Source: Macrostomum hystrix (taxonomy: Eukaryota; Animalia; Platyhelminthes). Taken from it: a DNA stretch of 64,000 bases. Positions 7,966-40,875 of the stretch are shown here, piece by piece. A program made the position numbers and the translations under genes. Within the stretch, counting starts at the first letter, position 1; each line of letters opens with the position of its first letter. The notes under the pieces were generated by a model that saw only the letters and a list, made by a program, of their open reading frames with translations, did no database searches and was not told the DNA's origin. The stretch covers positions 3,100,001 to 3,164,000 of the forward strand of contig CATNEN010000034.1 of assembly GCA_950097015.1 (NCBI GenBank), read 5' to 3'.

Positions 7966-8604
7966 CTACTCGTGTCCCTCTCTCCGCTGTATCTCTGTTT
8001 CTGATGTTCTCATGTACATTTTGAATCAACAATATGAACGCATATATCTCCTATTTACAGACTTTTTACTATAATACAATATAAGGTACGAAAGTGGTAT
8101 TTTGATGTCTTGTAGATACTTTCATAACTTGCATTGTTGTTTTTCTATTGTATTAGCTGAGTGACGTTAGTAATTTTCTGGCCTAAATATGAGTTACGAG
8201 CCAGTATGAACAAGCACTTTTGTACTAGTACAAGATTAAAGCATTGAAATTAATCTACATTTATTACTTCACTCACAAACAGTTTTTTATTGCACAAAAA
8301 ATAAGCTGCTATATTGGAATCTAGAACTAGGGCTTGCAAACCAAATTTGCTCAATTCTTGATTGGCTAGAGATCCTGCTGGCAATCATTGAAAATTTGTT
8401 CGTATTTGGTGCGCAATCGAAGCGTAAGCTGCTAGGTAATTTCAGTATTAAAAGCTTACGTTGACAAGAACAAGCAAGCATTTGAAAAAAACTGAATATC
8501 TTTAGGCTTACGCGTCTATATACTCGAGTTTCCACTATTTGTTACACAAAAATTTGCGAGCCATATTGTGTCGTGTGCCTTTTTGCGTGATTTTAGAATG
8601 TACT

Positions 8605-11056
8605 TTAAACGTCGGACGCTGCGAAAACTTGCTGGCGCCTGCCTCCTCTCACAGTGTCGCATCTAACACTGTCCACTGTGGCGTAGGCGTTGTACAAATC
8701 GTAGTGCCTCTGCTGCTGCTGCTGCTGTGCCTGATGCCGATGATAATGCTGACGCTGCTGATTGTAGCTTAACGACGAAGGCGGCGATGGCAGCGGAGGT
8801 GGAGGCTGCAGAGGCGGCGGAGGCGGCTGCGGTGATTGCTGCTGCTGTAAAGGCACTGCACGAGGTGGCAGCGACGGCGGCAGCTGCTTTCCAGATCTTC
8901 TGGTCAGCCGACGACTGAGCCAGGTGCGCCAGACTGTCAAGGACTGACTGTTAGCCCACACCAGCAGGCTGGCCGGCAGTCCGGCAGTCAGCGACATGAA
9001 GATCTTCAACATGTAGACGGCTGCTGACGGCTTCGCGGAGAGGCGGCAACCGGCGGCGCCGCTGACGCCGTCGCGAGTGGCACAGCCGGGCCTGTCCAGG
9101 ACCGAGTCGAGGCTGTGCGCCCAGCGCGATCGCTCGGCCAGCTCGTAGATGTTGGCGGCCAGCACACAGGCGGCAGGCAGGGCGAACAGGAAGGCGAAGA
9201 GGCTCAGCCGGGCGGCTCTCTGCTCGGAGCTGCAGCCGACGGCGGTGGGGTCGCCGGCCTGGGCGGCTGCGCTGGTTTTTTCCTCCGGCTGCTGCATGGT
9301 CGATCTGTGCTGCTGCTGGCTGAGCTCGTCGGACGGGAAGTGCGGAGCCCCGGGATGGGCGAGCACGGAGCGGAGGGCCGATACGAGGAAGCCCAGACCG
9401 AGCAGCAGGGCTGTTGCCATGGGCACCACCTGGATTTGATTGCGGCGGAGAGCACCTGAGAGTCCCGTGTAGCTAGCTAAAGCTCCTAATGCGCTCGTAA
9501 TTATTACTTTACTTTCGACTGGTCTGTGGGCACTTTCTCATCGCCAGACAGTGTACACTCCCACTATGCCTTGGAGGTTGGCCCTAATGGGCGTAAGTTG
9601 CGCAAAAACCTCCAAGCCTTCTCTCCGCGGCTGTGCCCCAAATAAATGTGGCCTCGCCGTGGAATCGGGCTCAGGAACCTTAATGCGAGAGGAATGCGCG
9701 TTAGACCGCTCTGCCACGTGACGAAAACGAAATTCCAACCTGAAACATGAGCAGATCGGCTGGCCTCGAACCGTCCACCACGCACAGGTGAGTGAGCTCG
9801 TCACCTTCGATGCGTTGCAGTACCAGCAGGGTCACGCTGAGCAGCAGCGGCGCCCCCCAGGCCAGCAGGTGCAGCCACACAGTGCGCTCGGCCAGCAGCC
9901 TGTGATGCCACCGCCTGGCAGCGCTGAGGTGCCAGCAGAGCGCCAGAGCCAGCCACCAGAGCAGGCCGGCCAGCCAGCTGAAGTACAACAGCAGGAAGAT
10001 GGCCGCGCACCACTGACCGGCGTGTCGGCTGACGAGCACCAGCTCGTTGGCCACTCCGGGGCCGGCGGCCATCGAGGCGGACCGGCTGCAAGCCAGCTCC
10101 GGGCCGAGGGCGGCGCGCAGCAGGTGTCCCCCAGCGTGCACCAGGTGGCAGGCCGACACCCACACCACGGGCCGCTCGGGATAGCGAAATCGGCCCGCGT
10201 CGATAGCGAAGGTTGCCAATGCCAGGCCGGAGTAGACGACCGCCGCCACTGACCAGGCGAGCATCCAAGCGCCGGCGAAGTCGCGATCCTCTTTGGCGAA
10301 TAAGTAGCTGGACAGGCAGCGCTTGGCGCACCAGCCGCCGCCGCCTCCACCGACTGTAATCTCAGCCAGGGAGCACTTCTGACCATGCGACGCGCTGCCG
10401 TCAGCTTTGCCTCGACCCGGCACAGCTGAGGCGCCAGACGCGGCAATGTCAATGTTCGCTGACGCGTTTCCCCATCGATCCGTGCCGCTGGCGCCAATAT
10501 GGTTGCTGAGAGGCAGCTGCGGCATGTGCTGATTAAGCTGATCCACCAGGGCGTTGAACTCCTCATTGCTAGGCCGCAGGCAGAGATTCCTCCTAGAGCC
10601 GACGTTCTCCTTCTCCAGCAGCTCGCAGTCCAGGTGTTCCGGCCAGTCGGAGCCGTACTGGCTGAGCCTGGCCTGGCAAAGGCGCCTCACCGACTGGCAG
10701 AACTCGCGACACGGCCGGACCAGCAGGCTCTGGTCGCGATTGCAGAACGGCAGGTGGACGGAGCAGGCCAGCAGGCGCAGGTACGGAGCGCACTGCGTGT
10801 TGACGAGCTTATCGAGACCGTCCAGTTGGCGGGCGACGCGGTCCTGGTTGACGAAACTGGCGGTGCTGTTGTAGCGGATGCTGGCACAGGCTGTCACCCG
10901 GATTGGCACTGGTGCGCAGGACTGTTCCGCCCTGGCGGAGTCGACGGCATCTTCGCCGCCAAGTGAGATCACAACTGCCGAGGAAGAGGCCGCATTCGCT
11001 GCTGCCGAGGCGATAATAAGCAGGAATGGGATAATGGATCTTTCAAGCGAAGGCAT
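8605..11056 (-). CDS. FZD: Divergent Frizzled-family Wnt receptor (exons 11056-9740 and 9429-8605; 713 aa)
   Basis: Signal peptide, 10-Cys CRD with YNST, ICL1 RFRYPERP and seven hydrophobic segments. The phase-0 intron CAG|GTTGGA...ATCCAG|GTG gives an ungapped alignment to the Frizzled GD..C.V....L..F...P segment. C-terminal PDZ ligand SDV. Symbol is family-level only. Confidence 0.93.
9532..9718 (-). mobile_element. tRNA-derived SINE, copy 2, inside the Frizzled intron
   Basis: Minus strand reads GTGGCAGAGCGGTCTAACGCG...GAGCCCGATTCCACGGCGAGGCCACA...GTGTACACTGTCTGGCGATGAGAAAGT. Confidence 0.8.
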
Positions 11057-19080: not shown

Positions 19081-22000
19081 ATGTCGTCCCGGCCGCAAAG
19101 CTCGGGCGTGAGATCTCGCGGTCGCCAGCCGCAGTCCACTTCGCAGCAGCAGCTGCACGGCGGCAGCCAGGCCTGGTCGGCCGCCAGCGACGAGGTCGAC
19201 GTGGCCAATCCGCACGTGCTGGACCAGGAGCCGGAAGCATGCCAGTCCGACAATCCGTTTGAAAGCCAGGCCGGGCAGGCCGATCTGCAGGTTGAGGAGG
19301 CCCACGGCTGCTGGTATCGCTTCAAGCGGGGCCTGCGCGGTAAGCTGCCACATTGGACATTGGAGACAGATGAGAAGAGACCGGAGGGGAGAGGCCGGGG
19401 AGAGGGGAGAGGCGATCGGTGAGAGATGGGAGAAGAGATCAGTTATAGAGGGGAGAAGAGATCAGTTATGAAGGGGAGAAGATATCAGTTAGAGAGGGGA
19501 GAAGAGATCAGTGAGAGAGGTGAGAAGAGATCATTTAGAGAGGTGGGAGAAGAGATCAGTTCGAGAGGGGAGAAGAGATCAGTTAGAAAGCGGAGAAGAG
19601 ATCAGTAAGAGAGGGGAGAAGAGATCAGTGAGAGAGGGGAGAAGAGATCAGTTAGAGAGGGGAGAAGAGATCAGTTCGAGAGGTGAGAAGAGATCAGTGA
19701 GAGAGGTGAGAAGAGATCATTTAGAGAGGTGGGAGAAGAGATCAGTTCGAGAGGGGAGAAGAGATCAGTTAGAAAGGGGAGAAGAGATCAGTAAGAGAGG
19801 GGAGAAGAGATCAGTGAGAGAGGGGAGAAGAGATCAGTTAGAGAGGGGAGAAGAGATCAGTGAGAGAGGTGAGAAGAGATCAGTGAGAGAGGTGAGAAGA
19901 GATGAGTGAGAGAGGTGAGAAGAGATCAGTGAGAGAGGTGAGAAGAGATCAGTGAGAGAGGTGAGAAGAGATCAGTTAGAGAGGTGGGAGAAGAGATCAG
20001 TGAGAGAGGTGAGAAGAGATCAGTGAGAGAGGTGAGAAGAGATCAGTTAGAGAGGTGGGAGAAGAGATCAGTGAGAGGGGAGAAGAGATCAGTGAGAGAG
20101 GTGAGAAGAGATCAGTGAGAAAGGTGAGAAGAGATCAGTGAGAAAGGTGAGAAGATTTCAGTTAGAGAGGTGAGAAGAGATGGGAGGTATGTGTTTCCTG
20201 AGTAACTGTACCAACTAGTTAAGTTACAGAGAAATCATTCTACCAGTATGGGTGGTCAGAGAAAACTTGTTGCAACCAAATCGCACCCCAATGTCACTAA
20301 AGCCTTGTGGCTAACCAAGGATACGGTGGACGTGACTGGCAATTCCGAGTTGCGCATTAAGACCACCCTGCGAGAGCTGGTGCTGTACTGTGTCTACCTC
20401 ACAGTGCTGTCCATTTGTAAACAGATGCTTTATATTTGAGTCTGTTTTCATAAATCCGTAACTAACTCGAGAAAATCACACAGAAAATGTGTCCACTTTT
20501 AGCTTAAAATGTAATTTGTAATTCACATATTGTAATTCACATATTTTGTAATTTATCGGTCATTAACTCGGTTTAGAAACTAGAAGTTGACCTGTTCTGG
20601 TCTAGGCCGGAAATGTAGAAAATGAATTTCACGGTAGTGTCGTTATTCACACATCTAGCAGTGCAGCTTTAAATTCCTATGTTTCCTCGAAACCGTCACT
20701 CGCTCGCAGCAATTTGGCGCACCAACATGACCGAGGACACGCGAGAGGACAGGGAGCTGTACATCAAGACCACCCTGCGGGAGCTCATTGTCTACTTGTT
20801 CTTCCTCATTGTTCTCATGATTTGTAAGATTTTCCTCTGTAAACGTAGTGCATTCAATGGTTCTATTTTAGAACTCCCATGTTTTTCTCAGTTTAGCTTT
20901 TAGTTTGACCTGTTTTATTTATTTTATTTAATTTATTTTTTCTATTACCCTAACCGAAGTCCTATTTGATCTTCAGATCGCTCGATTTCTATCTGAATTT
21001 TAATCTTCAAATCCCAAATCAACCTCAAATCTCTAGATCCCCACCCAAACCGAAATCACTAGATCCTAACCCTAACCGAAATCCCTAGATCCCTACCCTA
21101 ACCGAAGTCCCTAGATCCCCACCCTAACCGAAGTCCCTAGATCCCCACCCTAACCAAAATCCCTAGATCCCCACCCTAACCGAAGTCCCAAGATCCCACT
21201 CTAACCGAAATCCCAAGATCCTCACCCTAACCGAAATCCCCTAAATCCCCACCCTAACCGAAGTCCCAAGATCCCACCCTAACCGAAAGCCCAAGATCCT
21301 CACCCTAACCGAAATCCCAAGATCCCCACCCTAACCGAAGTCCCAAGATCCCCACCCTAACCGAAGTCCCAAGATCCCCACCCTAACCGAAAGCCCAAGA
21401 TCCCCACCCTAACCGAAAGCCCAAGATCCCCACCCTAACCGAAATCCCTAGATCCCCACCCTAACCGAAAGTCCAAGATTCCCACCCTAACCGAAATCCC
21501 AAGATCCCCACCCTAACCGAAATCCCAAGATCCCCACCCTAACCGAAGTCCCAAGATCCCACTCTAACCGAAAGTCCAAGATCCCCACTCTAACCGAAAG
21601 TCCAAGATCCCCACCCTAACCGAAATCCCTAGATCCCCACCCTAACCGAAAGCCCAAGATCCCACCCTAACCGAAATCCCTAGATCCGAACCCTAACCGA
21701 AAGTCCAAGATTCCCACCCTAACCGAAAGTCCAAGATCCCCACCCTAACCGAAAGCCCAAGATCCCCACCCTAACCGAAATGCCTAGATCCCCACCCTAA
21801 CCGAAATCCCTAGATCCCCACCCTAAAGAATGTCTCTAGATCCCATGCTATTAGATATTAGAATTTTCTAATTCCCATCTTTCAGTGGCCTTCGGCATGA
21901 CCAGCTCGACAATGTACTATTTCACAAGCGTCATGCAGGCCCAGTTCGACCAAGCGCCCAACTCGGAGACACAGACCACATTCGCCACGGCTACCACCAT

Positions 22001-25000
22001 TGCCGACTGGTGGCGGGTGAGCATTTTTTAGTATTTTTAAAGAGGAATTTTTTTAGTGCCTTGATGATATTGTTATCTATTTCCCTGTATTTTTATATCC
22101 CAAGTTTCAGTTAATCTCCTAATATTCTCTACCCGCCTTAATCCCTATTCCATTCTCCTAATTATCCCACTTGTGCAGTCTCTACTCACCTCAATCCTTA
22201 TTCCATTCTCCCAATTATCCCACGTGTGCAGTCTCTACTCACCTCAATCCTTATTCCATTCTCTCAATTATCCCACTTGTGCAGTCTCTACCCACCTCAA
22301 TCCTTATTCCATTCTCCCAATTATCCCACTTGTGCAGTCTCTACCCACCTCAATCCCTATTCCATTATCCCAATTATCCCACTTGTGCAGTCTCTACCCA
22401 CCTCAATCCCTATTCCATTATCACAATTATCCCATTTCAACTGTCCGCTCCCATCCGCAGTTCATGAAGGGCCCACTACTGGACGGCCTGTACGTGACCA
22501 ACTGGTACAACAACGCCAACTTCACTGACTCGCGCGAATTGAACTTTGTCTATTACGAAAACAAACTACTTGGCGTGCCGCGCGTTCGTCAGGTTAAGGT
22601 GCGCAACGACAGCTGCTCGATTGCCGACGACTTCAAGAACGAGATCAAGGCCTGCTATGCCATGTACAGTCCGGGTGTTGAGGATACGAACAATTTCGGC
22701 TATATGAATTCAACTGCCTGGAATTACACTTCTGAGAAGGTTCTGGATGGCCGCAGCTACACTGGCCAGATTGCCACGTACGGCGGCGGTGGATTCTACG
22801 CCGATCTGACTAGGAATAAGGACGACTCTAACGCTATCATTGATGAGCTGTTCAAGGTGAGACGGAAGATTAGTAAAATCGTTAGTCAAATATGATTTTT
22901 TAATTGGATAGATAGTTGTTTTTTAATTAAAATCTGCCGAAACGCAACCAAAGAGTCTAATTACTGAAAATTGGAGACAGCAAAGCAACCAAGACAGGCA
23001 CAATAGCAACTATAGCAGACCCCATAGCAACCAAGACAGGCGCATTAGCAACTATAGCAGACCCCATAGCAACCAAGACAGGCGCATTAGCAACCGAAGC
23101 AGGCTCCATAGCAACCAAGACAGGCACAATAGCAACTATAGCAGACCCCATAGCAACCAAGACAGGCACAATAGCAACTATAGCAGACCCCATAGCAACC
23201 AAGACAGGCACAATAGCAACTATAGCAGACCCCATAGCAACCAAGACAGGCACAATAGCAACTATAGCAGACCCCATAGCAACCAAGACAGGCACAATAG
23301 CAACTATAGCAGACCCCATAGCAACCAAGACAGGCGCATTAGCAACCGAAGCAGGCTCTATACATACCCAAACAGATGTACAATATTAGCAGGTTAAAGT
23401 GTATAAAAAGTCAATATTTACCTATCAATTGGATAAGTGAAGATATCACGCAACTCCCGCAGGGCCTTTGGATCGATCGCGGCACTCGCGTAGTCTTCGT
23501 CGACTTCACCGTGTACAACGCCAACATCAACCTGTTCTGCGTGGTCAAGCTGATCATGGAATTCCCTGCCACAGGCGGCGCCATCCCGTCTAGCGAGTAC
23601 CGCACTGTGAAGCTGCTGCGCTACGTTGAGCCTCGCGACTACTTCGTGCTGATCTGCGAGTGCATCTTCATGCTGTTCATCTGCTACTACGTTGTTGAGG
23701 AGGTGATCGAGATCAAGCGGCACAAGCTGGCTTACTTCAAGACCTTCTGGAACTGGCTGGACATCCTGGTCATTGTCATCTCGCTGGTCTGCGCTGGATT
23801 CAACGTCTACCGAACCATTGCCGTTGGCAATAAACTGACCCAGCTGTTGAAGGACGAGTCGAAATTCCCAGACTTTGACTTCCTGTCCTACTGGCAGCTG
23901 CAGTTCAATAATGCCATAGCAATTACCGTGTTCTTCGCCTGGGTGAAGATCTTCAAATACATCAGCTTCAACAAGACTATGACCCAGCTGAGTTCCACTC
24001 TGGGTGCCTGCGCCAAGGATCTAGTCGGCTTCGCCGTGATGTTCTTCATCATCTTCTTCGCCTTCGCCCAGCTGGGCTACCTGATCTTCGGCACCCAGGT
24101 GAAGGATTTCCGCGAATTCCAGCAGGCCATCTTCACCCTGTTCCGCATCATCCTGGGCGACTTCGATTTCCACGAATTGGAGAATGCGCACCGAGTTCTG
24201 GGACCAATCTTCTTTCTGCTGTACGTGTTCTTCGTCTTCTTCGTGCTAATCAACATGTTCCTGGCCATTATCAACGACACCTACAGCGAGGTGAAGAGCG
24301 AATTGGCCAACCAGCCCAACGATTTTGAGATGACCGACTACTTCAAGGAGGTAACTGGTTTGCTGTTGTGTGGGAAATTAATGCTTCAATGATGACAATT
24401 TGCCTAGTTGACCAGGTGTCTAGATATGAGCAGGTGTCTAGATATGAACAGGTGTCTAGATATGACCAGGTGTCTAGATATGACCAGGTGTCTAGATATG
24501 ACCAGGTGTCTAGATGACCAGGTGTCTAGATGACCAGGTGTCTAGATGACCAGGTGTCTAGATGACCAGGTGTCTAGATGACCAGGTGTCTAGATGACCA
24601 GGTGTCTAGTTGGCCAGGTGTCTAGATAACGCGGGTCTAGATGACCACGTGTCTAGATATGACCAGGTGTCTAGATGACCCGGGTCTAGATGACCAGGTG
24701 TCTAGATATGAACAGGTGTCTAGATGACCAGGTGTCTAGATGACCCAGGTCTAGATGACCAGGTGTCTAGATGACCCGGGTCTAGATGACCAGGTGTCTA
24801 GATGACCCGGGTCTAGATGACCAGGTGTCTAGATGACTAGGTGTCTAGATGACCAGGTGTCTAGATGACCAGGTGTCTAGATGACCAGGTGTCTAGATGA
24901 CCCGGGTCTAGATGACCAGGTGTCTAGATGACCAGGTGTCTAGATGACCCGGGTCTAGATGACCAAGTGTCTAGATGACGCGGGTCTAGATGACCAGGTG

Positions 25001-28000
25001 TCTAGATGACTAGGTGTCTAGATGACCAGGTGTCTAGATGACCAGGTGTCTAGATGACCAGGTGTCTAGATGACCCGGGTCTAGATGACCAGGTGTCTAG
25101 ATGACCCGGGTCTAGATGACCAGGTGTCTAGATGACGCGGGTCTAGATGACCAGGTATCTAGATAACAAATAAAATAATTTTTTAAATATATCGTGTTGA
25201 CTATCATATTTATAAATAGCTAACGAGCTATTAAGAACATTTTAATTAGCTCGTAGAAATTAAAGTATTCTTTTATGATGGTTTTATATTAGATTTTCTC
25301 CAATTTCATAAATAAATCAGTGAAAGCCTATTTTGAAATTGTTTACTTTGGTTGCCATGACGAGATGGAGACCTACTTGAGATCAGTTTTTGTTCACCTG
25401 CCAGACAGGAAAATTTAACTGCTAAATTATTTAAAGCAGAATCTGACGAAAAATTCTCTGATATTCAATTCCCCCACCATTTGTTCATGAATTATTAAAT
25501 TTTCCAAGCCTTCTATGTCCCACAATTACCTTTATTAGCTATTTTGAAAGATAGAAGATAGAACAAATATTTAACAGAATAATTAAATCCGAGCAACAGA
25601 AAAATACTAAACTTGTCGTACTAGTACACTAGTCTAGTATGTTTTATATCTTCTGAAGTCACACTTCTTCTCTATACCTACTATGAAGCATATCTGAGTG
25701 TTATCTAGGATCTACTCTAGAGCTGAGTCTAGGATCTACTCTAGATCTGAGTCTAGGATCTACTCTAGATCTGAGTCTAGGATCTACTCTAGATCTGAGT
25801 CTAGGATCTACTCTAGATCTGAGTCTAGGATCTACTCTAGATCTGAGTCTAGGATCTACTCTAGATCTGAGTCTAGGATCTACTCTAGAGCTGAGTCTAG
25901 GATCTACTCTAGATCTGAGTCTAGGATCTACTCTAGATCTGAGTCTAGGATCTACTCTAGATCTGAGTCTAGGATCTACTCTAGATCTGAGTCTAGGATC
26001 TACTCTAGATCTGAGTCTAGGATCTACTCTAGATCTGAGTCTAGGATCTACTCTAGAGCTGAGTCTAGGATCTACTCTAGATCTGAGTCTAGGATCTACT
26101 CTAGATCTGAGTCTAGGATCTACTCTAGATCTGAATCTAGGATCGTATTTCATTGCCTGCTTTCTATACTCCCACAGCGCGCAGGCAAGGTGCTTGACAA
26201 GCTGAACATCAAGCGCGACAAGATCGTCGATATTCAGAAGGCCATGCAATCGGCCGATATCAACAATGACAGGCAGTTGGACTTTGAGGAGTGGCGCGCC
26301 GAGCTCAAGATGTGAGTCCCGTGTTGTGCTGACCTTGAATTTATGGTTAGTGTGCTAGGCTAGGCATCGTAGGCATTCATATCTGCTGTGGTAGGTAGCG
26401 TAGGCATTCATATCTACTGTGGTAGGTAGCGTAGGCATTCATATCTGCTGTGGTAGGTAGCGTAGGCATTCATATCTGCTGTGGTAGGTAGCGTAGGCAT
26501 TCATATCTGCTGTGGTAGGTACCGTAGGCATTCATATCTGCTGTGGTAGGTACCGTAGGCATTCATATCTGCTGTGGTAGGTACCGTAGGCATTCATATC
26601 TGCTGTGGTAGGTAGCGTAGGCATTCATATCTGCTGTGGTAGGTAGCGTAGGCATTCATATCTGCTGTGGTAGGTAGCGTAGACATTCATATCTGCTGTG
26701 GTAGGTAGCGTAGGCATTCATATCTGCTGTGGTAGGTAGCGTAGACATTCATATCTGCTGTGGTAGGTAGCGTAGACATTCATATCTGCTGTGGTAGGTA
26801 GCGTAGACATTCATATCTGCTGTGGTAGGTAGCGTAGACATTCATATCTGCTGTGGTAGGTAGCGTAGGCATTCATATCTGCTGTGGTAGGTCTACCATT
26901 CATTCGAAAAAAACATAATAATAAAATCTCCATAGGCGAGGCTACGCCGACGGCGAAATTGAAGCCATGTTTGCCAAATACGACGTCGACGGCGATCGCG
27001 TACTGGACGAAGAGGAACAGCGGAAGATGACCAGCGAATTGGAGGGCCAGAAGGTACAGTGCTGCTTCCTGGCTTTCTATTATTATAATTATAATACTTA
27101 TAAATGTGCATATTAATTAGTACTAGAATATTTTAGTTCTCAATTCGGTCTACTTCTAGTAGTGTTTAGTAGCAAAGTGTTATGCTCTTATAGAATTTAG
27201 TTAAATATAATAATAACTCGTTTTAGTTATTTGTGTTGGAATATGTATATTAATCGAAAATGAAATCATTTTAATATTCTAACAACATCACAAACTCTAT
27301 TTTTAATAATTTATTCAACAGCGCAACCTGGACGCCAATGCTGTAGGAGGGCTAATATTTTTTGTGTTGTCGTTTTTGGCTTTTGTTGTTAACCATAAGG
27401 GTTTTTACTGTCTTATCTTAAAAATAAACTATTGATATTGGAAATATCGATCTCTTATTGTTATAACCATAGTTCTATTGATGACAGCAGGACTGTCTAT
27501 ATTTATAATTTATGCGAATCTCTTTACCCAATATTTTCTATTCCTTATCCCAATCGTATTTTCTGTATATATAATTAAACTATTGTTAATTATCTCACGG
27601 CTGCTGTTTTCAAGTAAAAACAGGATTTTCTCCTGATATACTCCAGATCTACTCAAGATCTCTCTAGATCTACTCTAGATCTACTCTAGATCTAATCTTG
27701 ATCTACTCTAGATCTACTCTTGATCTAATCTTGATCTACTCTAGATCTACTCTAGATCTAATCTTGATCTACTCTAGATCTACTCTGGATCTACTCTAGA
27801 TCTACTCAAAATCTACTCAAGATCTAATCAAGATCTACTCTAGATCTACTCTTGATCTAATATTGATCTACTCTGGATCTACTCTAGATCTACTTATGAT
27901 CTATTCTACATTTAACGAGAAATAAAAGTCCTGATCTAACAAAGTCTTTCACCCTTCTTCGCGCCAATGGAAAGACCCTGTGGCTAACTCAGTCTCACCC

Positions 28001-28534
28001 ATTCGCACACATTGGCAGGCGGCGCTGAATGATCAAATCCAAACGGAACGCGAGCGACCTTCCACCGCCCGCTCAACTGCCGACCTGGGCGACGACAACC
28101 GGCAGCAGAGCTCTCGACGCGGCGGCAGCGCCGGCACCGGCGGCGGAGCGGGCGTCTCGTCGGAGGAGTTCACGGTGCTGGCCAGGCGGGTGGACCGCAT
28201 GGAGCACAGCATTGGCAGCATCGTGTCGAAGATCGACGCCGTCCTGGTGAAACTCGAAGCCATGGAGAAGGCCAAGCTGCGCCGCCGCGAGACCATGACC
28301 AAACTGCTGGACTCAATCAGCGAGAGCGAGGGCGTCTCGGACGAAATGAAGCGAGAACAGATGGAACAGCTGGTGCGCGAGGAGCTGGAGCGCTGGGAGG
28401 GCGAACCGGTGGATGCCGCCCCCGTATCGGCCCGAGCCGCCACAGCGAGGGGTCGTTCTGCCGGTTCTGCCGGCGGCGCCTCGCGTCCTGGTAGCGCGGC
28501 AGGCGGCGGCAGCGGCAGCGAGACCCGCTACTAG
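19081..28534 (+). CDS. PKD2: Polycystin-2 / TRPP cation channel (exons 19081-19339, 20303-20416 OR 20710-20823, 21886-22016, 22461-22856, 23463-24350, 26178-26311, 26936-27053, 28019-28534; 851 aa with one exon-2 variant)
   Basis: All junctions are GT-AG and in frame (2556 nt total). Motifs: [11 protein letters not shown] domain ([12 protein letters not shown]; WIDRGTR; [12 protein letters not shown]), filter [11 protein letters not shown]6 [13 protein letters not shown], two EF-hand loops and coiled coil [20 protein letters not shown]. Several motifs are closer to PKD2L1, so orthology within the family is unresolved. Confidence 0.96.
19420..20180. repeat. Purine-rich minisatellite, about 23-25-bp unit GAGAAGAGATCAGTGAGAGAGGT (PKD2 intron 1)
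   Basis: Tandem copies read directly. Confidence 0.93.
20303..20416 (+). CDS. PKD2: PKD2 exon 2a (alternative copy, 114 nt)
   Basis: AAG|CC...ATTT|GTAAAC, phase 1/1; encodes [38 protein letters not shown]. Confidence 0.8.
20710..20823 (+). CDS. PKD2: PKD2 exon 2b (alternative copy, 114 nt)
   Basis: GCAG|CA...ATTT|GTAAGA, phase 1/1; encodes [38 protein letters not shown]. Confidence 0.9.
21055..21830. repeat. Minisatellite, about 27-bp unit CCCTAACCGAAATCCCAAGATCCCCA(C) (PKD2 intron after exon 2b)
   Basis: Tandem copies, most containing one CCCTAA hexamer. Confidence 0.93.
22110..22440. repeat. Minisatellite, 53-bp unit (PKD2 intron 3)
   Basis: About 6 copies of CCTCAATCCTTATTCCATTCTCCCAATTATCCCACTTGTGCAGTCTCTACTCA, ending about 20 bp before the acceptor. 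Confidence 0.9.
22984..23355. repeat. Minisatellite, 42-bp unit GCAACCAAGACAGGCACAATAGCAACTATAGCAGACCCCATA (PKD2 intron 4)
   Basis: About 9 copies; contains eight CCATAGCAAC motifs. Confidence 0.93.
24410..25160. repeat. Minisatellite, 16-bp unit GACCAGGTGTCTAGAT (PKD2 intron 5)
   Basis: Tandem copies with 15- and 18-bp variants. Confidence 0.95.
25700..26140. repeat. Minisatellite, 24-bp unit CTAGATCTGAGTCTAGGATCTACT (PKD2 intron 5)
   Basis: About 18 copies; accounts for the SRIYSRSE repetitive ORF. Confidence 0.95.
26360..26893. repeat. Minisatellite, 31-bp unit GTAGGCATTCATATCTGCTGTGGTAGGTAGC (PKD2 intron 6)
   Basis: About 17 copies read directly. Confidence 0.95.
27640..27905. repeat. 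Short near-palindromic repeat, 11-bp unit CTAGATCTACT (PKD2 intron 7)
   Basis: Degenerate tandem copies rich in AGATCT and TCTAGA. Confidence 0.85.
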
Positions 28535-30174: not shown

Positions 30175-30873
30175 TTAGAATCGCCGCGACAGCCACTGCA
30201 TCAGCGTCTCCTGCCTCTCGCGACGACTATTTCCGCGTCGTCCGCCGGCGGCGCCATCGATGCGCGCGCCCAGGCTGCGGCAGTGCCGCTTGAATTCGCG
30301 CTTGTTGCCAACGAACTCCGGGCAGGTGTTGACAGTCTCGCATTGGGCAGACTCGGCCGGCTCCTGCGGGCAGCGGCAGTTGTTGCAGCCGTCGAAGAAG
30401 GTCGCGCCCCGCTGCTGGCGGCACAGCTTGCGCTCCTTGAAGCACTTGATTGGCCAGCGTTGGCCGCCTGCTGCTGGCGCGATGGCGCCTCCGGCTGCAG
30501 CCGCAGCCGCGGCCCGCTGGTTCTCCATGCGCCACCTGTAGCGCAGCATCTTCTTCTGCACCTTGCGGGCCAGCTTGGCGCAGTAGCGGGCCGCTTTGCG
30601 CTTCTGCCTCGGCTCCTGCAGCTCCTCCTCGCGCGGGCAGGACTTGATTGTGCAGGTCAACTTGTCCGCCTGAGAGCCGCAGGTGCACAGATTGCAGCCG
30701 TCCGACACCTTGAAGCCAATCAGAGCCGCGTCACCTGTGCAAACCTCCTGCGGCTTGACCTGGGCGCATGTGACATCCATGCTGCGGCCTCGGCCGCCGC
30801 GGCCAAAGCGTCGGCCGCTGACGATGGCGGCCGTGGAGAAGGCCAGGAACAGTAGTAGTACGACACGCATCAT
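30175..30873 (-). CDS. Secreted cysteine-rich protein with two pacifastin-like domains (intronless, 232 aa)
   Basis: Signal peptide MMRVVLLLFLAFSTAAIVSG; C-x14-CNLCTC-x8-CTIKSC and C-x11-CNNCRC-x9-CETVNTC; many dibasic sites; GC-rich coding-like sequence. Confidence 0.8.
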   Translation of the reverse strand: MMRVVLLLFLAFSTAAIVSGRRFGRGGRGRSMDVTCAQVKPQEVCTGDAALIGFKVSDGCNLCTCGSQADKLTCTIKSCPREEELQEPRQKRKAARYCAKLARKVQKKMLRYRWRMENQRAAAAAAAGGAIAPAAGGQRWPIKCFKERKLCRQQRGATFFDGCNNCRCPQEPAESAQCETVNTCPEFVGNKREFKRHCRSLGARIDGAAGGRRGNSRRERQETLMQWLSRRF

Positions 30874-34895: not shown

Positions 34896-36295
34896 ATGCC
34901 AGCCACGCTGTCTGAGCTGACACTTCTGGTCCTCTGCTTCTTGGCTCTCTGTGTCTTTTACAGCCGTGCTCAGGGTAAGAACAAAGATCCCTACTTCAAG
35001 ACCCTATATCCACAATCTAATTTAACCTCTAATTCACAATCCCTCACTCACAATCCTCATTTAAAACCCCCTATTCAGAATCCCTCATTCACAGAACCTT
35101 ATTCAGAATCCCTCATTCACAAACCCTGATTCAGAATCACACACTCACTCAGAATCCTTGATCATTCAGAATCATTCACAACCATCATTCACAACCCTCA
35201 TTCACAACCCTCATTCACAACCCTCATTCACAACCCCCATTCACAACCCCCATTCACAACCCTGATTCACAACCCTCATTACAGCTCTCATTCACAACCC
35301 TGATTCACAACCCTGATTCACAACCCTCATTTACAACTCTCATTCACAATCCCCATTCACAACCCTGATTCACAACCCTCATTTACAACTCTCATTCACA
35401 ATCCCTATTCACAACCCTGATTCACAACCCTCATTCACAACTCTCATTCACAACCATCATTCACAACCCTCATTCACAACTCTCATTCACAACCATCATT
35501 CACAACCCTCATTCACAACCCTCATTCACGATCCCCATTTACAACCCTCATCCACAAACCCCATTCACAACCCTCATTTACAACTCTCATTCACAATCCC
35601 CATTCACAACCCTGATTCACAACCCTCATTCACAATCCCTATTCACAACTCTCATTCACACCCCTCATTCACAATCCCCATTCACAACCCTCGTTCACTA
35701 CCGTTGTTCACTACCGTCATTCACTAGCTTCATTCACAATCCCCATTCACAACCCTCATTCACAACCCCCATTCACAACCCTCGTTCACTACCGTTATTC
35801 ACTACAGTCATTCACAATCCCCATTCACAACCCCGATCGCCGCCAGTGTACTCATCTGACTCGGGCGGTGGCATCAGCTGCTACGTCTGCAGCTCCATCA
35901 ACGGGTCCAACCCGGCCTGTCACGATCCGTTCGACGCGTCCCTGGTCGGCCTGACGACCCCCTGCAGCCAGGGCCGGCGCGACCAGAACGGACTGTTCCC
36001 GGCTCGCTTCTGCTACAAGCTGAAGGGCGTCAGGCGATCGGACGGTCAAGCCGTTCTCGTGCGTCGCTGCAGCGTCGATCCCCTAATCAACAGTGTAACC
36101 AAGAGCCACTGCGGGAATTTCAAGATTGCAACGGGCTCCAATTATCAATACTTTGACGGCTGCGTGTCCATGTGCCGCTTTGATGGCTGCAACGGAGGCT
36201 ACCGGACTGCCAACACCGCGTCTCCACTGCTGCTGCTGCTGATGCTGCTGATGCTGATAATGTTGATGATGATGTCACTTGGACCGCTGTCATAG
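34896..36295 (+). CDS. GPI-anchored Ly6/uPAR (three-finger) protein, QVR/sleepless-like (exons 34896-34974, 35847-36295; 175 aa)
   Basis: Signal exon MPATLSELTLLVLCFLALCVFYSRAQ ending G|GTAAGA and phase-1 acceptor CCAG|TG. Domain CYVCSS...CHDPF...C...FCYK...RRC...C...CVSMCRFDGCN (10 Cys) with a hydrophobic C-terminal tail. Confidence 0.88.
35140..35835. repeat. Minisatellite, 13-bp unit ATTCACAACCCTC (Ly6 intron)
   Basis: Degenerate tandem copies ending about 10 bp before the acceptor at 35846. Confidence 0.92.
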
Positions 36296-37578: not shown

Positions 37579-37591
37579 CTAACAATTTAAG

Positions 37592-40530
37592 CTCCCACTG
37601 CCTCCGCTGATCCCGCTGCTCCCACTGCCTCCGCTGCTCCCACTGCCTCCGCTGCTCCCACTGCCTCCGCTGCTCCCACTGCCTCCGCTGCTCCCACTGC
37701 CTCCGCTGCTCCCACTGCCTCCGCTGCTCCCACTGCCTCCGCTGCTCCCACTGCCTCCGCTGCTCCCACTGCCTCCGCTGCTCCCACTGCCTCCGCTGCT
37801 CCCACTGCCTCCGCTGCTCCCACTGCCTCCGCTGCTCCCACTGCCTCCGCTGCTCCCACTGCCTCCGCTGCTCCCACTGCCTCCGCTGCTCCCACTGCCA
37901 CCGCTGCTCCCACTGCCTCCGCTGATCCCACTGCCTCCGCTGCTCCCACTGCCTCCGCTGCTCCCACTGCCTCCGCTGCTCCCACTGCCTCCGCTGCTCC
38001 CGCTGTTCCAAATGCCTCCGCTACTCCCGCTGCTCCTACTGCCTCCGCTGATCCCACTGCCTCCTCTACTCCCACTGCCTCCGCTACTCCCACTGCCTCC
38101 GCTACTCCCACTGCCTCCGCTGATCCCACTGCCTCCGCTGCTCCCACTGCCTCCGCTACTCCCACTGCCTCCGCTGATCCCACTGCCTCCGCTGCTCCCA
38201 CTGCCTCCGCTACTCCCACTGCCTCCGCTGATCCCACTGCCTCCGCTGCTCCCGCTGTTCCAAATGCCTCCGCTACTCCCGCTGCTCCTACTGCCTCCGC
38301 TGCTCCCACTGCCTCCGCTACTCCCACTGCCTCCGCTGATCCCACTGCCTCCGCTGCTCCCGCTGTTCCAAATGCCTCCGCTACTCCCACTGCGGAGTGT
38401 TCTTTCCCCAGGGGGGAAATAGTTTGTGGCCTTTCTACTGTTAATAAAAATGTATTATCTAATCATGCTTAACTGAGGGTTTGGCGCTGGGCACTGTGGA
38501 CGAGTCATGACTAACCCCTTTTCTTGACGTAATGTGTCCTTTAAAGTAACGAGCAGGACAGCTTCAATCATAACTCTTATCTCGGCTTTCAAGGCTAATG
38601 CTCCTGAGACTATGAAGCCAAGTTTTTCTTAGCTGGGCTGAACAGATTGCTGTCAGTGAGTGGTTTCAGTGGGCTTTTTCGAAAACTAGCAAGATCTACG
38701 AGCGTAGAATATATTGGAGAGATTTTGAGCAGTCCACATGTGTCTAACTCTGTTGGCCAAATTTTTTTCCAGATTAGACTTTAATTTTACCCGGCTGACT
38801 CTGACACACCTAATTTTTTCAAGTCTTTTACAGACAAAAATAATGTAATTCTTCAAATCCAAAATAGTAAAAAAATTGAAATAATATCTACTCCGCTACT
38901 CCCACGGCCTCCGCTACTCCACTGCCTCCGCTACTCCCACTGCCTCCGCTACTCCCACTGCCTCCGCTACTCCACTGCCTCCGCTACTCCCACTGCCTCC
39001 GCTACTACACTGCCTCCGCTACTCCCACTGCCTCCGCTACTACACTGCCTCCGCTACTCCACTGCCTCCGCTACTCCACTGCCTCCGCTACTCCCACTGC
39101 CTCCGCTACTCCACTGCCTCCGCTACTCCCACTGCCTCCGCTACTCCACTGCCTCCGCTACTCCCACTGCCTCCGCTACTCCACTGCCTCCGCTACTCCC
39201 ACTGCCTCCGCTACTCCACTGCCTCCGCTACTCCCACTGCCTCCGCTACTCCACTGCCTCCGCTACTCCCACTGCCTCCGCTACTCCACTGCCTCCGCTA
39301 CTCCCACTGCCTCCGCTACTCCACTGCCTCCGCTGCTCCCACTGCCTCCGCTGCTCCCACTGCCTCCGCTACTCCACTGCCTCCGCTACTCCACTGCCTC
39401 CGCTACTCCCACTGCCTCCGCTACTCCACTGCCTCCGCTGCTCCCACTGCCTCCGCTGCTCCCACTGCCTCCGCTACTCCACTGCCTCCGCTGCTCCCAC
39501 TACCTCCGCTACTCCACTGCCTCCGCTACTCCCACTGCCTCCGCTGCTCCCACTGCCTCCGCTACTCCACTGCCTCCGCTGCTCCCACTGCCTCCGCTAC
39601 TCCCACTGCCTCCGCTACTCCCACTGCCTCCGCTACTCCCACTGCCTCCGCTACTCCACTGCCTCCGCTACTCCCACTGCCTCCGCTACTCCACTGCCTC
39701 CGCTACTCCACTGCCTCCGCTACTCCCACTGCCTCCGCTACTCCACTGCCTCCGCTACTCCCACTGCCTCCGCTACTCCACTGCCTCCGCTGCTCCCACT
39801 GCCTCCGCTGCTCCCACTGCCTCCGCTACTCCACTGCCTCCGCTGCTCCCACTACCTCCGCTACTCCACTGCCTCCGCTACTCCCACTGCCTCCGCTGCT
39901 CCCACTGCCTCCGCTACTCCACTGCCTCCGCTGCTCCCACTGCCTCCGCTACTCCCACTGCCTCCGCTGCTCCCACTGCCTCCGCTACTCCACTGCCTCC
40001 GCTGCTCCCACTGCCTCCGCTACTCCACTGCCTCCGCTACTCCACTGCCTCCGCTACTCCCACTGCCTCCGCTACTCCCACTGCCTCCGCTACTCCACTG
40101 CCTCCGCTACTCCCACTGCCTCCGCTACTCCCACTGCCTCCGCTACTCCACTGCCTCCGCTACTCCACTGCCTCCGCTACTCCCACTGCCTCCGCTACTC
40201 CACTGCCTCCGCTACTCCCACTGCCTCCGCTACTCCACTGCCTCCGCTACTCCCACTGCCTCCGCTACTCCCACTGCCTCCGCTACTCCACTGCCTCCGC
40301 TACTCCCACTGCCTCCGCTACTCCCACTGCCTCCGCTACTCCACTGCCTCCGCTACTCCCACTGCCTCCGCTACTCCCACTGCCTCCGCTACTCCCACTG
40401 CCTCCGCTACTCCCACTGCCTCCGCTACTCCACTGCCTCCGCTACTCCCACTGCCTCCGCTACTCCACTGCCTCCGCTACTCCACTGCCTCCGCTACTCC
40501 CACTGCCTCCGCTACTCCACTGCCTCCGCT
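37592..40530. repeat. Minisatellite, 18/17-bp unit CTCCCACTGCCTCCGCT(G/A), split by a unique insert of about 490 bp (38396-38890)
   Basis: Tandem copies on both sides of a non-repetitive block. Confidence 0.95.
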
Positions 40531-40875
40531 ATTGCTGACGCCAATGTTGCCCCAGCTAAATGTAAAACGTTCGCGAAGAACAAAGAACATAGATCCACGA
40601 TATGTAGTGGGGCTCTTGCATAATAAATGTACTGGATGTTTATTAAATTATCTCGGTAGACAATTGGATTTAAAGTAAAGAAAATCGAAATTATTGTTTA
40701 TTTCTTTTTCCATTGTAGCTGACACAGATTACTGCGAAAAAAATTAACTAGCCATGGTACATAGCTAGATACGAGTATTTCAAATCAGTAAATTGTACTA
40801 GTATTATAATTGCACCTCGCACTATAAGCTACGAGTGTAAAGGTGAAAAATTGACTTGCTCTCAGCAGTTCAGTT

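Follow-up and report, generated by a model that had tools for sequence, protein, structure and literature searches.

Tandem-duplicated, probably alternative exons encode the pre-S1/S1 segment of a PKD2-type channel in the flatworm Macrostomum hystrix

Exons 5N and 5A of Nav channels and exons 8 and 8a of Cav1.2 are mutually exclusive homologous exons of 92 and 104 nucleotides (nt); these lengths are not multiples of three, and inclusion of both copies or skipping of both shifts the reading frame. Tandem-duplicated mutually exclusive exons have been reviewed as a class (PMC9013439, PMC9741552, PMC5740500). Within the TRP superfamily, the insect channels TRPL, Pyrexia and TRPM form isoforms through mutually exclusive exons, and the same sources describe Pkd2 without them (PMC6137742, PMC7143563). 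Here we describe a PKD2-type (TRPP) channel gene of the flatworm Macrostomum hystrix that carries two tandem copies, 2a and 2b, of its second exon. The gene lies in a 64,000-nt stretch (positions 3,100,001 to 3,164,000, forward strand, of contig CATNEN010000034.1, assembly GCA_950097015.1), hereafter the window, to whose first letter all positions refer unless another locus is named. An earlier note on this DNA, made from the sequence alone, had proposed that the two exons are alternatives and had stated that mutually exclusive exons were not known to it for TRPP channels; the literature searched, which leaves most subscription journals outside its coverage, likewise describes such exons for neither PKD2 nor PKD2L, nor for any TRPP channel or Macrostomum, and contains no case of a TRPP channel in which the pre-S1 helix and the first transmembrane segment (S1) are swapped. 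We consider it highly probable that PKD2 exon 2 was duplicated in tandem long ago and that its two copies now serve as alternatives, each spliced in singly, so that the gene yields two channel isoforms. These isoforms would differ only in 38 residues, which make up the pre-S1 helix on the cytosolic side and S1 over the first two thirds of its length.

The gene is assigned to the PKD2 type on the predicted translation of its exons, in which polycystin cation channel and polycystin (TOP) domains were found: the two coding exons after exon 3 score 103 and 76.7 bits with PF20519 and 263.5 bits with PF08016 in Pfam, and the gene is 78-94% identical, exon by exon, to the PKD2 protein P0211 (Mlig004710g1) of Macrostomum lignano. 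The coding part of exon 1 (19082-19339, plus strand) begins with an ATG at 19082, is followed by the donor G|gtaagc after 19339, and shares 78% identity over 88 amino acids with the M. lignano proteins P0211 and P0238. Exon 3 (21886-22016, plus strand) encodes the end of S1 and the start of the extracellular polycystin domain, and is 98% identical to its counterpart at the M. lignano locus L003.

Between these constitutive exons lie exon 2a (20303-20416) and exon 2b (20710-20823), both on the plus strand, separated by an intron (20417-20709, plus strand) of 293 nt with GT-AG ends and without a conserved element. They are homologous exons from a tandem duplication. Each is 114 nt long, has AG immediately before it and GT immediately after, and is open in the identical phase (1/1), 1 base of its first codon being supplied by the previous exon and 2 bases of its last being left to the next. 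The first encodes an alternative pre-S1 helix with the first two thirds of S1, the second an alternative pre-S1 helix with the S1 start. The copies agree at 70 of 114 nucleotides and in 19 of 37 whole codons, or 20 of 38 residues when the common split Ala codon (GCC vs GCA) is included, and seven of the identical residues, or eight with that Ala, are written with different codons. In the cytosolic stretch 2a reads TVDVTGNSE where 2b reads TEDTREDRE, and in the S1 stretch CVYLTVLS replaces LFFLIVLM, the S1 face being Y-C-V-Y-L-T-V-L-S in 2a and Y-L-F-F-L-I-V-L-M in 2b. The coordinates, length, phase and splice dinucleotides given in the earlier note were all reproduced exactly, as were its quoted peptides and, with the split Ala codon counted, its 20 identical residues and eight synonymous differences. 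A tblastn search revealed no third copy of exon 2 in the 64-kb window.

A search for runs gave eight, from two studies (P1 and P2), and evidence from RNA comes from the Logan contigs of four of these, matched to positions 20182-21010 only. This interval was chosen beforehand, and the introns on either side of it hold arrays of 780-835 nt: a GA-rich minisatellite in intron 1 (19400-20181, no strand assigned; 23-nt unit, about 34 copies) and a C-rich one in the intron after 2b (21011-21845, no strand assigned; 26-, 52- and 78-nt units), both delimited with Tandem Repeats Finder. A 157-nt contig of run X1 (study P1) covers 20302-20416 with 0 mismatches and has loose ends of 16 nt before and 26 nt behind; it corresponds to 19323-19338, 20302-20416 and 21886-21911, that is, to exon 1, exon 2a and exon 3. 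Runs X5 and X6 (study P2) each contain one 1164-nt contig that covers 20709-20823, runs on at either side in a long loose end and joins exon 1, exon 2b and exon 3, and X1 and X2 also contain 2b followed by the letters of exon 3. The loose-end letters occur once each in the window, at 19323-19338 (or 19309-19338) and at 21886-21911 (or 21886-21915). The joints 19339^20303, 20416^21886, 19339^20710 and 20823^21886 are thus all present in assembled transcripts, and the joint 20416^20710, which would connect 2a to 2b, was found in none of the contigs of the four runs. Each exon has therefore been seen by itself between constitutive exons 1 and 3, 2a in one contig, just as the earlier note had proposed; exon 2a, whose absence from all reads the note had named as telling against it, is present in RNA.

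Sequencing depth in X1 is similar for the two exons (6.9 for 2a, 5.2-5.4 for 2b), and X5 and X6 show 2b only, at depths of 143 and 110; isoforms cannot be ranked by contig depth, and minor variants drop out of contigs. The earlier note's suggestion that 2a may be the minor form is neither confirmed nor refuted by these depths. At its 3' end the 2a contig has the 26-nt flank that would be expected of an assembly bubble at k=31 whose two paths share their last four letters, ATTT. A further, well-expressed PKD2-like transcript was observed in the same material: contigs of X1, X5 and X6 match the window at 20752-20785 with 3 mismatches, in the conserved core only (depth 82 in X5 and X6), and their flanks, ...TNMTEDTKTN and ...LIYCVFLVVL, are both absent from the window. 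This transcript probably derives from a paralog elsewhere in the genome, because it resembles the M. lignano protein P0244 (A0A1I8IF70).

Several means by which the choice between 2a and 2b could be made were considered. Since 114 is 3 x 38, inclusion of both exons or skipping of both keeps the frame, and nonsense-mediated decay (NMD) therefore cannot police the choice. Steric or U12-type incompatibility was rejected: the intron between the exons measures 293 nt in the window, 163 nt in the M. lignano ortholog (L003) and 159 nt in an M. lignano paralog (L004), too long for steric exclusion, and all sites are GT-AG. The one consistent difference between the exons is donor strength, since the 2a-type donors of window, ortholog and paralog (GTAAAC, GTAAAC and GTAATA) are all without a G at +5 and the 2b-type donors (GTAAGA, GTAAGT and GTATGT) all have it; the AAG acceptor of 2a is found in both species. 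Both splice sites that the earlier note had called weak, this acceptor and the GTAAAC donor, are present as described. Because the weaker donor lacks the +5 G in all three genes, exon 2a plausibly needs an activator, and we give about an even chance to an arrangement in which 2a requires a positive factor and 2b is the default.

The tests for RNA structure were negative. The 2a donor does lie in a hairpin of 7-10 base pairs (20416-25 with 20441-50), as had been pointed out, but its minimum free energy of -8.3 kcal/mol corresponds to a z of only -1.45, 20 of 200 shuffled sequences fold as well, and the orthologous 2a donor of M. lignano lacks it (z +0.65); being neither significant nor conserved, it was rejected as evidence of regulation. 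For docking/selector or looping-out pairing, nothing conserved emerged from an inverted-repeat scan or from an alignment of the introns of window, ortholog and paralog, and inter-intron duplex energies, compared with shuffles for three introns, gave z between -1.9 and +0.9. Pairing of the GA-rich upstream with the C-rich downstream minisatellite was not significant (z -1.06). Masking of the 2b donor by downstream minisatellite units looked recurrent and was rejected as weak and confined to M. lignano, the duplex of donor and downstream array giving z of -2.5 at L003, -1.9 at L007, -1.2 in the window and -0.7 in the paralog with shuffled probes. At L003 the 2b donor region (8045-8062 of that locus) is complementary at 15 of 18 nt to the repeated unit of the array in the downstream intron (8242-8852), and L007 has an equivalent.

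These results bear on the possibility that 2a and 2b are independent cassette exons, with transcripts containing both or neither at appreciable levels. Their length, divisible by three, means that NMD would not police such transcripts, the 293-nt GT-AG intron between them should be spliceable, no RNA-structure device for exclusivity was found, and rare forms are dropped by contigs. We nevertheless regard independent cassettes as improbable, as the 20416-20710 joint is missing from all four runs, the 2a contig continues into exon 3 and the 2b contigs begin in exon 1; moreover, two S1 helices or none would be expected to invert or destroy the membrane topology and so be selected against. If the two exons are instead spliced in singly, as we favor, exclusivity may be strict and the choice regulated.

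The exon pair is shared with M. lignano. The locus L003 (P0211, Mlig004710g1) is syntenic with the window, and the ortholog Mlig004710 is present in M. lignano in three copies (L003, L007 and L008), none of them closer to the window than the 78-94% given above and each with an intact 2a-type and an intact 2b exon of 114 nt, bounded by AG and GT, with 2a upstream. A paralog that is about 65% identical overall, Mlig009305 (L004 and L009), carries a 2a-type and a 2b-type exon in the same order, so that the length of 114 nt, the 1/1 phase and the AG...GT boundaries hold in the window and in all five of these M. lignano loci (L003, L004, L007, L008, L009). Window and M. lignano ortholog have 32 of 37 amino acids in common in 2a and 36 of 37 in 2b. 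Comparison of the window with L003 by the Nei-Gojobori method gave, for 2a, 0.085 nonsynonymous (dN) and 0.69 synonymous (dS) substitutions per site (dN/dS 0.12; Fisher p ~1e-5 to 9e-5) and, for 2b, a dN of 0.012 and a dS of 0.42 (dN/dS 0.03; Fisher p 2e-5), and the introns flanking the pair have diverged beyond alignment between the two species. To judge from these substitution patterns, both exons are under purifying selection between the two Macrostomum species, as had been suggested on the basis of their synonymous differences, and the survey of relatives proposed in the earlier note thus found 2a intact in all three copies of the ortholog and a 2a-type exon in one paralog. Existing M. lignano gene models hide the pair: Mlig004710 is annotated with the 2b form only, the Mlig009305 proteins use the 2a-type exon only, and neither gene is annotated with both.

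The distribution of the pair among paralogs points to an old duplication. Two further M. lignano paralogs (L005 and L006) have a 2b-type exon only, and single copies of exon 2 were found in the cestode Rodentolepis nana (L002, 10211-10318) and the annelid Capitella teleta (L010, 5245-5355). A maximum-likelihood tree of full-length proteins from which the exon 2 segment had been removed groups the five M. lignano PKD2 paralogs in one clade (support 95/99) and places the two pair-bearing genes in different sub-clades of the Macrostomum PKD2 group (support 84-89); the duplication would therefore predate the radiation of the Macrostomum PKD2 paralogs. The simplest reading of the tree is one duplication before this radiation, followed by at least one loss of 2a. 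Alternatively, independent duplications, or conversion between paralogs, would explain the presence of the pair in two genes. In nemerteans, gastropods, oysters and sea stars, the isoforms on record show no difference in exon 2, and text searches for Logan transcripts of other Macrostomum species turned up none. Four proteins (P0145, P0154, P0157 and P0216) considered as instances of a 2a-type exon outside flatworms were rejected, as they cluster with Capitella and have a conventional S1. The extent of the 37-codon exon is matched from end to end in Capitella and nearly so in the cestode. The same length, 114 nt, applies to exon 2 of human PKD2; if that is right, it and the annelid and cestode matches suggest that the exon unit which was duplicated is very old.

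Exon 2b had been called the conventional form of the two. In mean likeness to 68 distinct PKD2 exon 2 peptides from outside Macrostomum it is indeed somewhat nearer to other animals (22.3 of 37 residues, vs 18.9 for 2a), but only moderately so, and the Capitella exon is about equally like both. Each copy has departed from conserved positions: 2b has N where the others have R5, and 2a has S, T or A where the others have R14, and V where they have T10.

A second alternative takes 2a for a duplicate in decay, or a cryptic one, whose inclusion is only noise, leaving effectively one channel, of the 2b form. Exon 2a is the more diverged copy, both in this comparison with other animals (18.9 vs 22.3 of 37) and in its match to PKD2L1 (21 vs 38 bits), its splice sites are weaker, the deeply covered runs X5 and X6 show 2b only, and the M. 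lignano ortholog is annotated with the 2b form alone. A decaying exon would scarcely retain a dN/dS of 0.12 at a dS of 0.69 while the surrounding introns diverge beyond alignment, nor stay intact in three M. lignano copies; the 2a-type exon is also kept, and is the annotated one, in a paralog that is about 65% identical overall, and within X1 the two exons are covered to similar depth (2a 6.9, 2b 5.2-5.4). We therefore think decay very unlikely. Least probable of all, and barely credible in our judgment, is that the contig joining exon 1, 2a and exon 3 is an assembly chimera or the product of a processed retrocopy in the DNA: that X1 is RNA is no more than a guess, and the contig is short (157 nt), shallow (depth 6.9) and flanked by 16 and 26 nt, less than 31 nt, yet it matches 2a with 0 mismatches, its flanks are unique in the window and stop precisely where splice sites are predicted, the 3' flank of 26 nt agrees with the k=31 bubble and its common ATTT, the same run holds the junction of 2b and exon 3, and the conservation of 2a is independent of this contig.

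The segment encoded by the pair can be located in known channel structures. Among all PDB chains, both exon peptides match only polycystins, and at the same residues, a region that comprises residues 80-116 of PKD2L1 (6du8) and 200-236 of PKD2 (5mke). The 2b peptide aligns to PKD2L1 80-114 and PKD2 200-236 with 38.6 bits (E 3e-9) and the 2a peptide to PKD2L1 81-112 with 21.4 bits (E 2e-3); with both peptides matching the same residues of PKD2L1 and PKD2 at these E values, the likeness is not one of chance. The part that is swapped is thus the cytosolic pre-S1 helix together with S1 up to roughly two thirds of its length. In 2a and 2b alike, residue 2 is a Trp aligned to W81 of PKD2L1 (6du8) and W201 of PKD2 (5mke). 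This Trp, the core IKTTLREL and the Y after the core are kept in both versions, and the differences, at about 18 positions, lie within S1 and between it and the Trp, where they affect the majority of residues. In human channels the pre-S1 Trp, placed for W201 at 14 residues before S1, binds a lysine of the TRP-like domain; this contact is required for channel activation and is weakened by phosphatidylinositol 4,5-bisphosphate (PIP2) (PMC6483072).

In the mechanism that we propose, exon 2 would have been duplicated in tandem long ago and one of the two copies would be spliced into each transcript, and the resulting swap would serve not to turn the channel on or off but to tune its gating, its coupling to lipid (PIP2) or the packing of its subunits. 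The two isoforms may thus differ in function, and the differences in gating, trafficking or partner binding put forward in the earlier note would be of this kind. More tentatively, and with rather less confidence than we would give to its contrary, we suggest that 2a/2b acts as a gating and lipid-coupling switch that alters the contact between N- and C-terminal parts, the inhibition by PIP2 or the choice of partner subunit, such that each of two paralogs would give rise to two physiologically distinct channels, deployed in different cells of the ciliated or sperm type.

Several observations weigh against the reading of two alternative exons and two functional isoforms. The exon 1 and exon 3 sides of the contigs were identified from the letters of their loose ends and not by direct alignment. 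Exon 2a is seen in a single 157-nt contig from one run that is recorded only as 'RNA?', and the 16- and 26-nt flanks of this contig fall below the 31-nt rule for a bridging record. The reading frame would survive inclusion of both exons or of neither, so that such transcripts would escape NMD, and their absence is not something that contigs can show. Tests of intron pairing, of the hairpin and of steric hindrance identified no mechanism that enforces exclusivity. On the side of function, an alanine scan of PKD2L1 from W81 to L95 found W81 alone to be essential (PMC6483072), and the pre-S1 residues that do differ may therefore have small effects only.

The interest of the locus lies in the channel and in the part of it that is exchanged. 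Polycystin-2 channels have a central place in cilia signalling and in human polycystic kidney disease. Exchange of the pre-S1 helix is of particular interest because experiments have defined a gating role for this helix; the evidence for its part in gating and PIP2 regulation has so far come from mutagenesis alone. The pair would supply two natural, selected and exchangeable versions of pre-S1/S1 in an animal with transgenesis and RNA interference, and a comparison of 2a with 2b would reveal which pre-S1/S1 residues tune the gating, lipid coupling or assembly of TRPP channels.

Beyond exon 3, the remaining coding exons of the gene were located on the plus strand by tblastn of the M. lignano protein P0211 against the window, between 22500 and 28531, in blocks at about 22500-22856, 23445-24368, 26175-26312, 26928-27053 and 28016-28531; these limits are those of high-scoring segment pairs and not exact splice sites. 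Minisatellites with units of 16-53 nt occupy nearly every intron of the gene, those after exon 3 including arrays at 22126-22434, 22984-23346 and 24404-24600. The orthologous introns of M. lignano hold different, unrelated arrays, which indicates that the arrays turn over fast while the exons stay. On the 3' side of the PKD2 gene, a gene for a pacifastin-like secreted protein lies on the minus strand (30178-30870) and is 63% identical to its M. lignano counterpart; three M. lignano contigs, like the window, have this gene after PKD2, so that synteny is conserved. Farther along, the end of a long open frame (35860-36292, plus strand) is cysteine-rich (CYVCSS...CHDPFD...CNGG) and resembles a domain of the Ly6/uPAR type, with a long 'HNPHSQPSFTTLI' repeat ahead of it, and at 37583-40675 about 3 kb of short tandem repeats, Pro/Leu- and Ala/Thr-coding and open in several frames, may be either coding or satellite.

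Set beside the systems described so far, the PKD2 pair resembles Dscam1 and 14-3-3zeta in being a cluster of homologous alternative exons, and differs from them in that no conserved or statistically unusual intron complementarity of the kind expected of docking and selector sequences was found around 2a and 2b in window, ortholog or paralog. With insect TRPL, Pyrexia and TRPM it shares membership of the TRP superfamily and, if its exons are indeed exclusive, the formation of isoforms through mutually exclusive exons, whereas in the insects it is N-terminal or first coding exons, in genes of the TRPC, TRPA and TRPM types, that are concerned. The contact between N- and C-terminal parts characterized in TRPP2 and TRPP3 involves exactly the pre-S1 helix that 2a and 2b encode, with the key Trp at residue 2; that work used point mutants of human channels (PMC6483072), whereas here two whole versions of helix and S1 occur naturally. 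The closest likeness is to the Nav and Cav pairs: a tandem duplication, equal length and phase, an exon that encodes a transmembrane helix with an adjoining segment of a six-transmembrane channel, probably one copy per mRNA, and purifying selection on both copies. Unlike those pairs, 2a and 2b have a frame-keeping length of 114 nt, so that NMD cannot enforce exclusivity, and they exchange the pre-S1/S1 part of a TRP-type channel instead of a voltage sensor or pore, in a flatworm host. The PKD2 gene of Macrostomum would thus add a TRPP case to the channels that have been diversified by tandem exon duplication.

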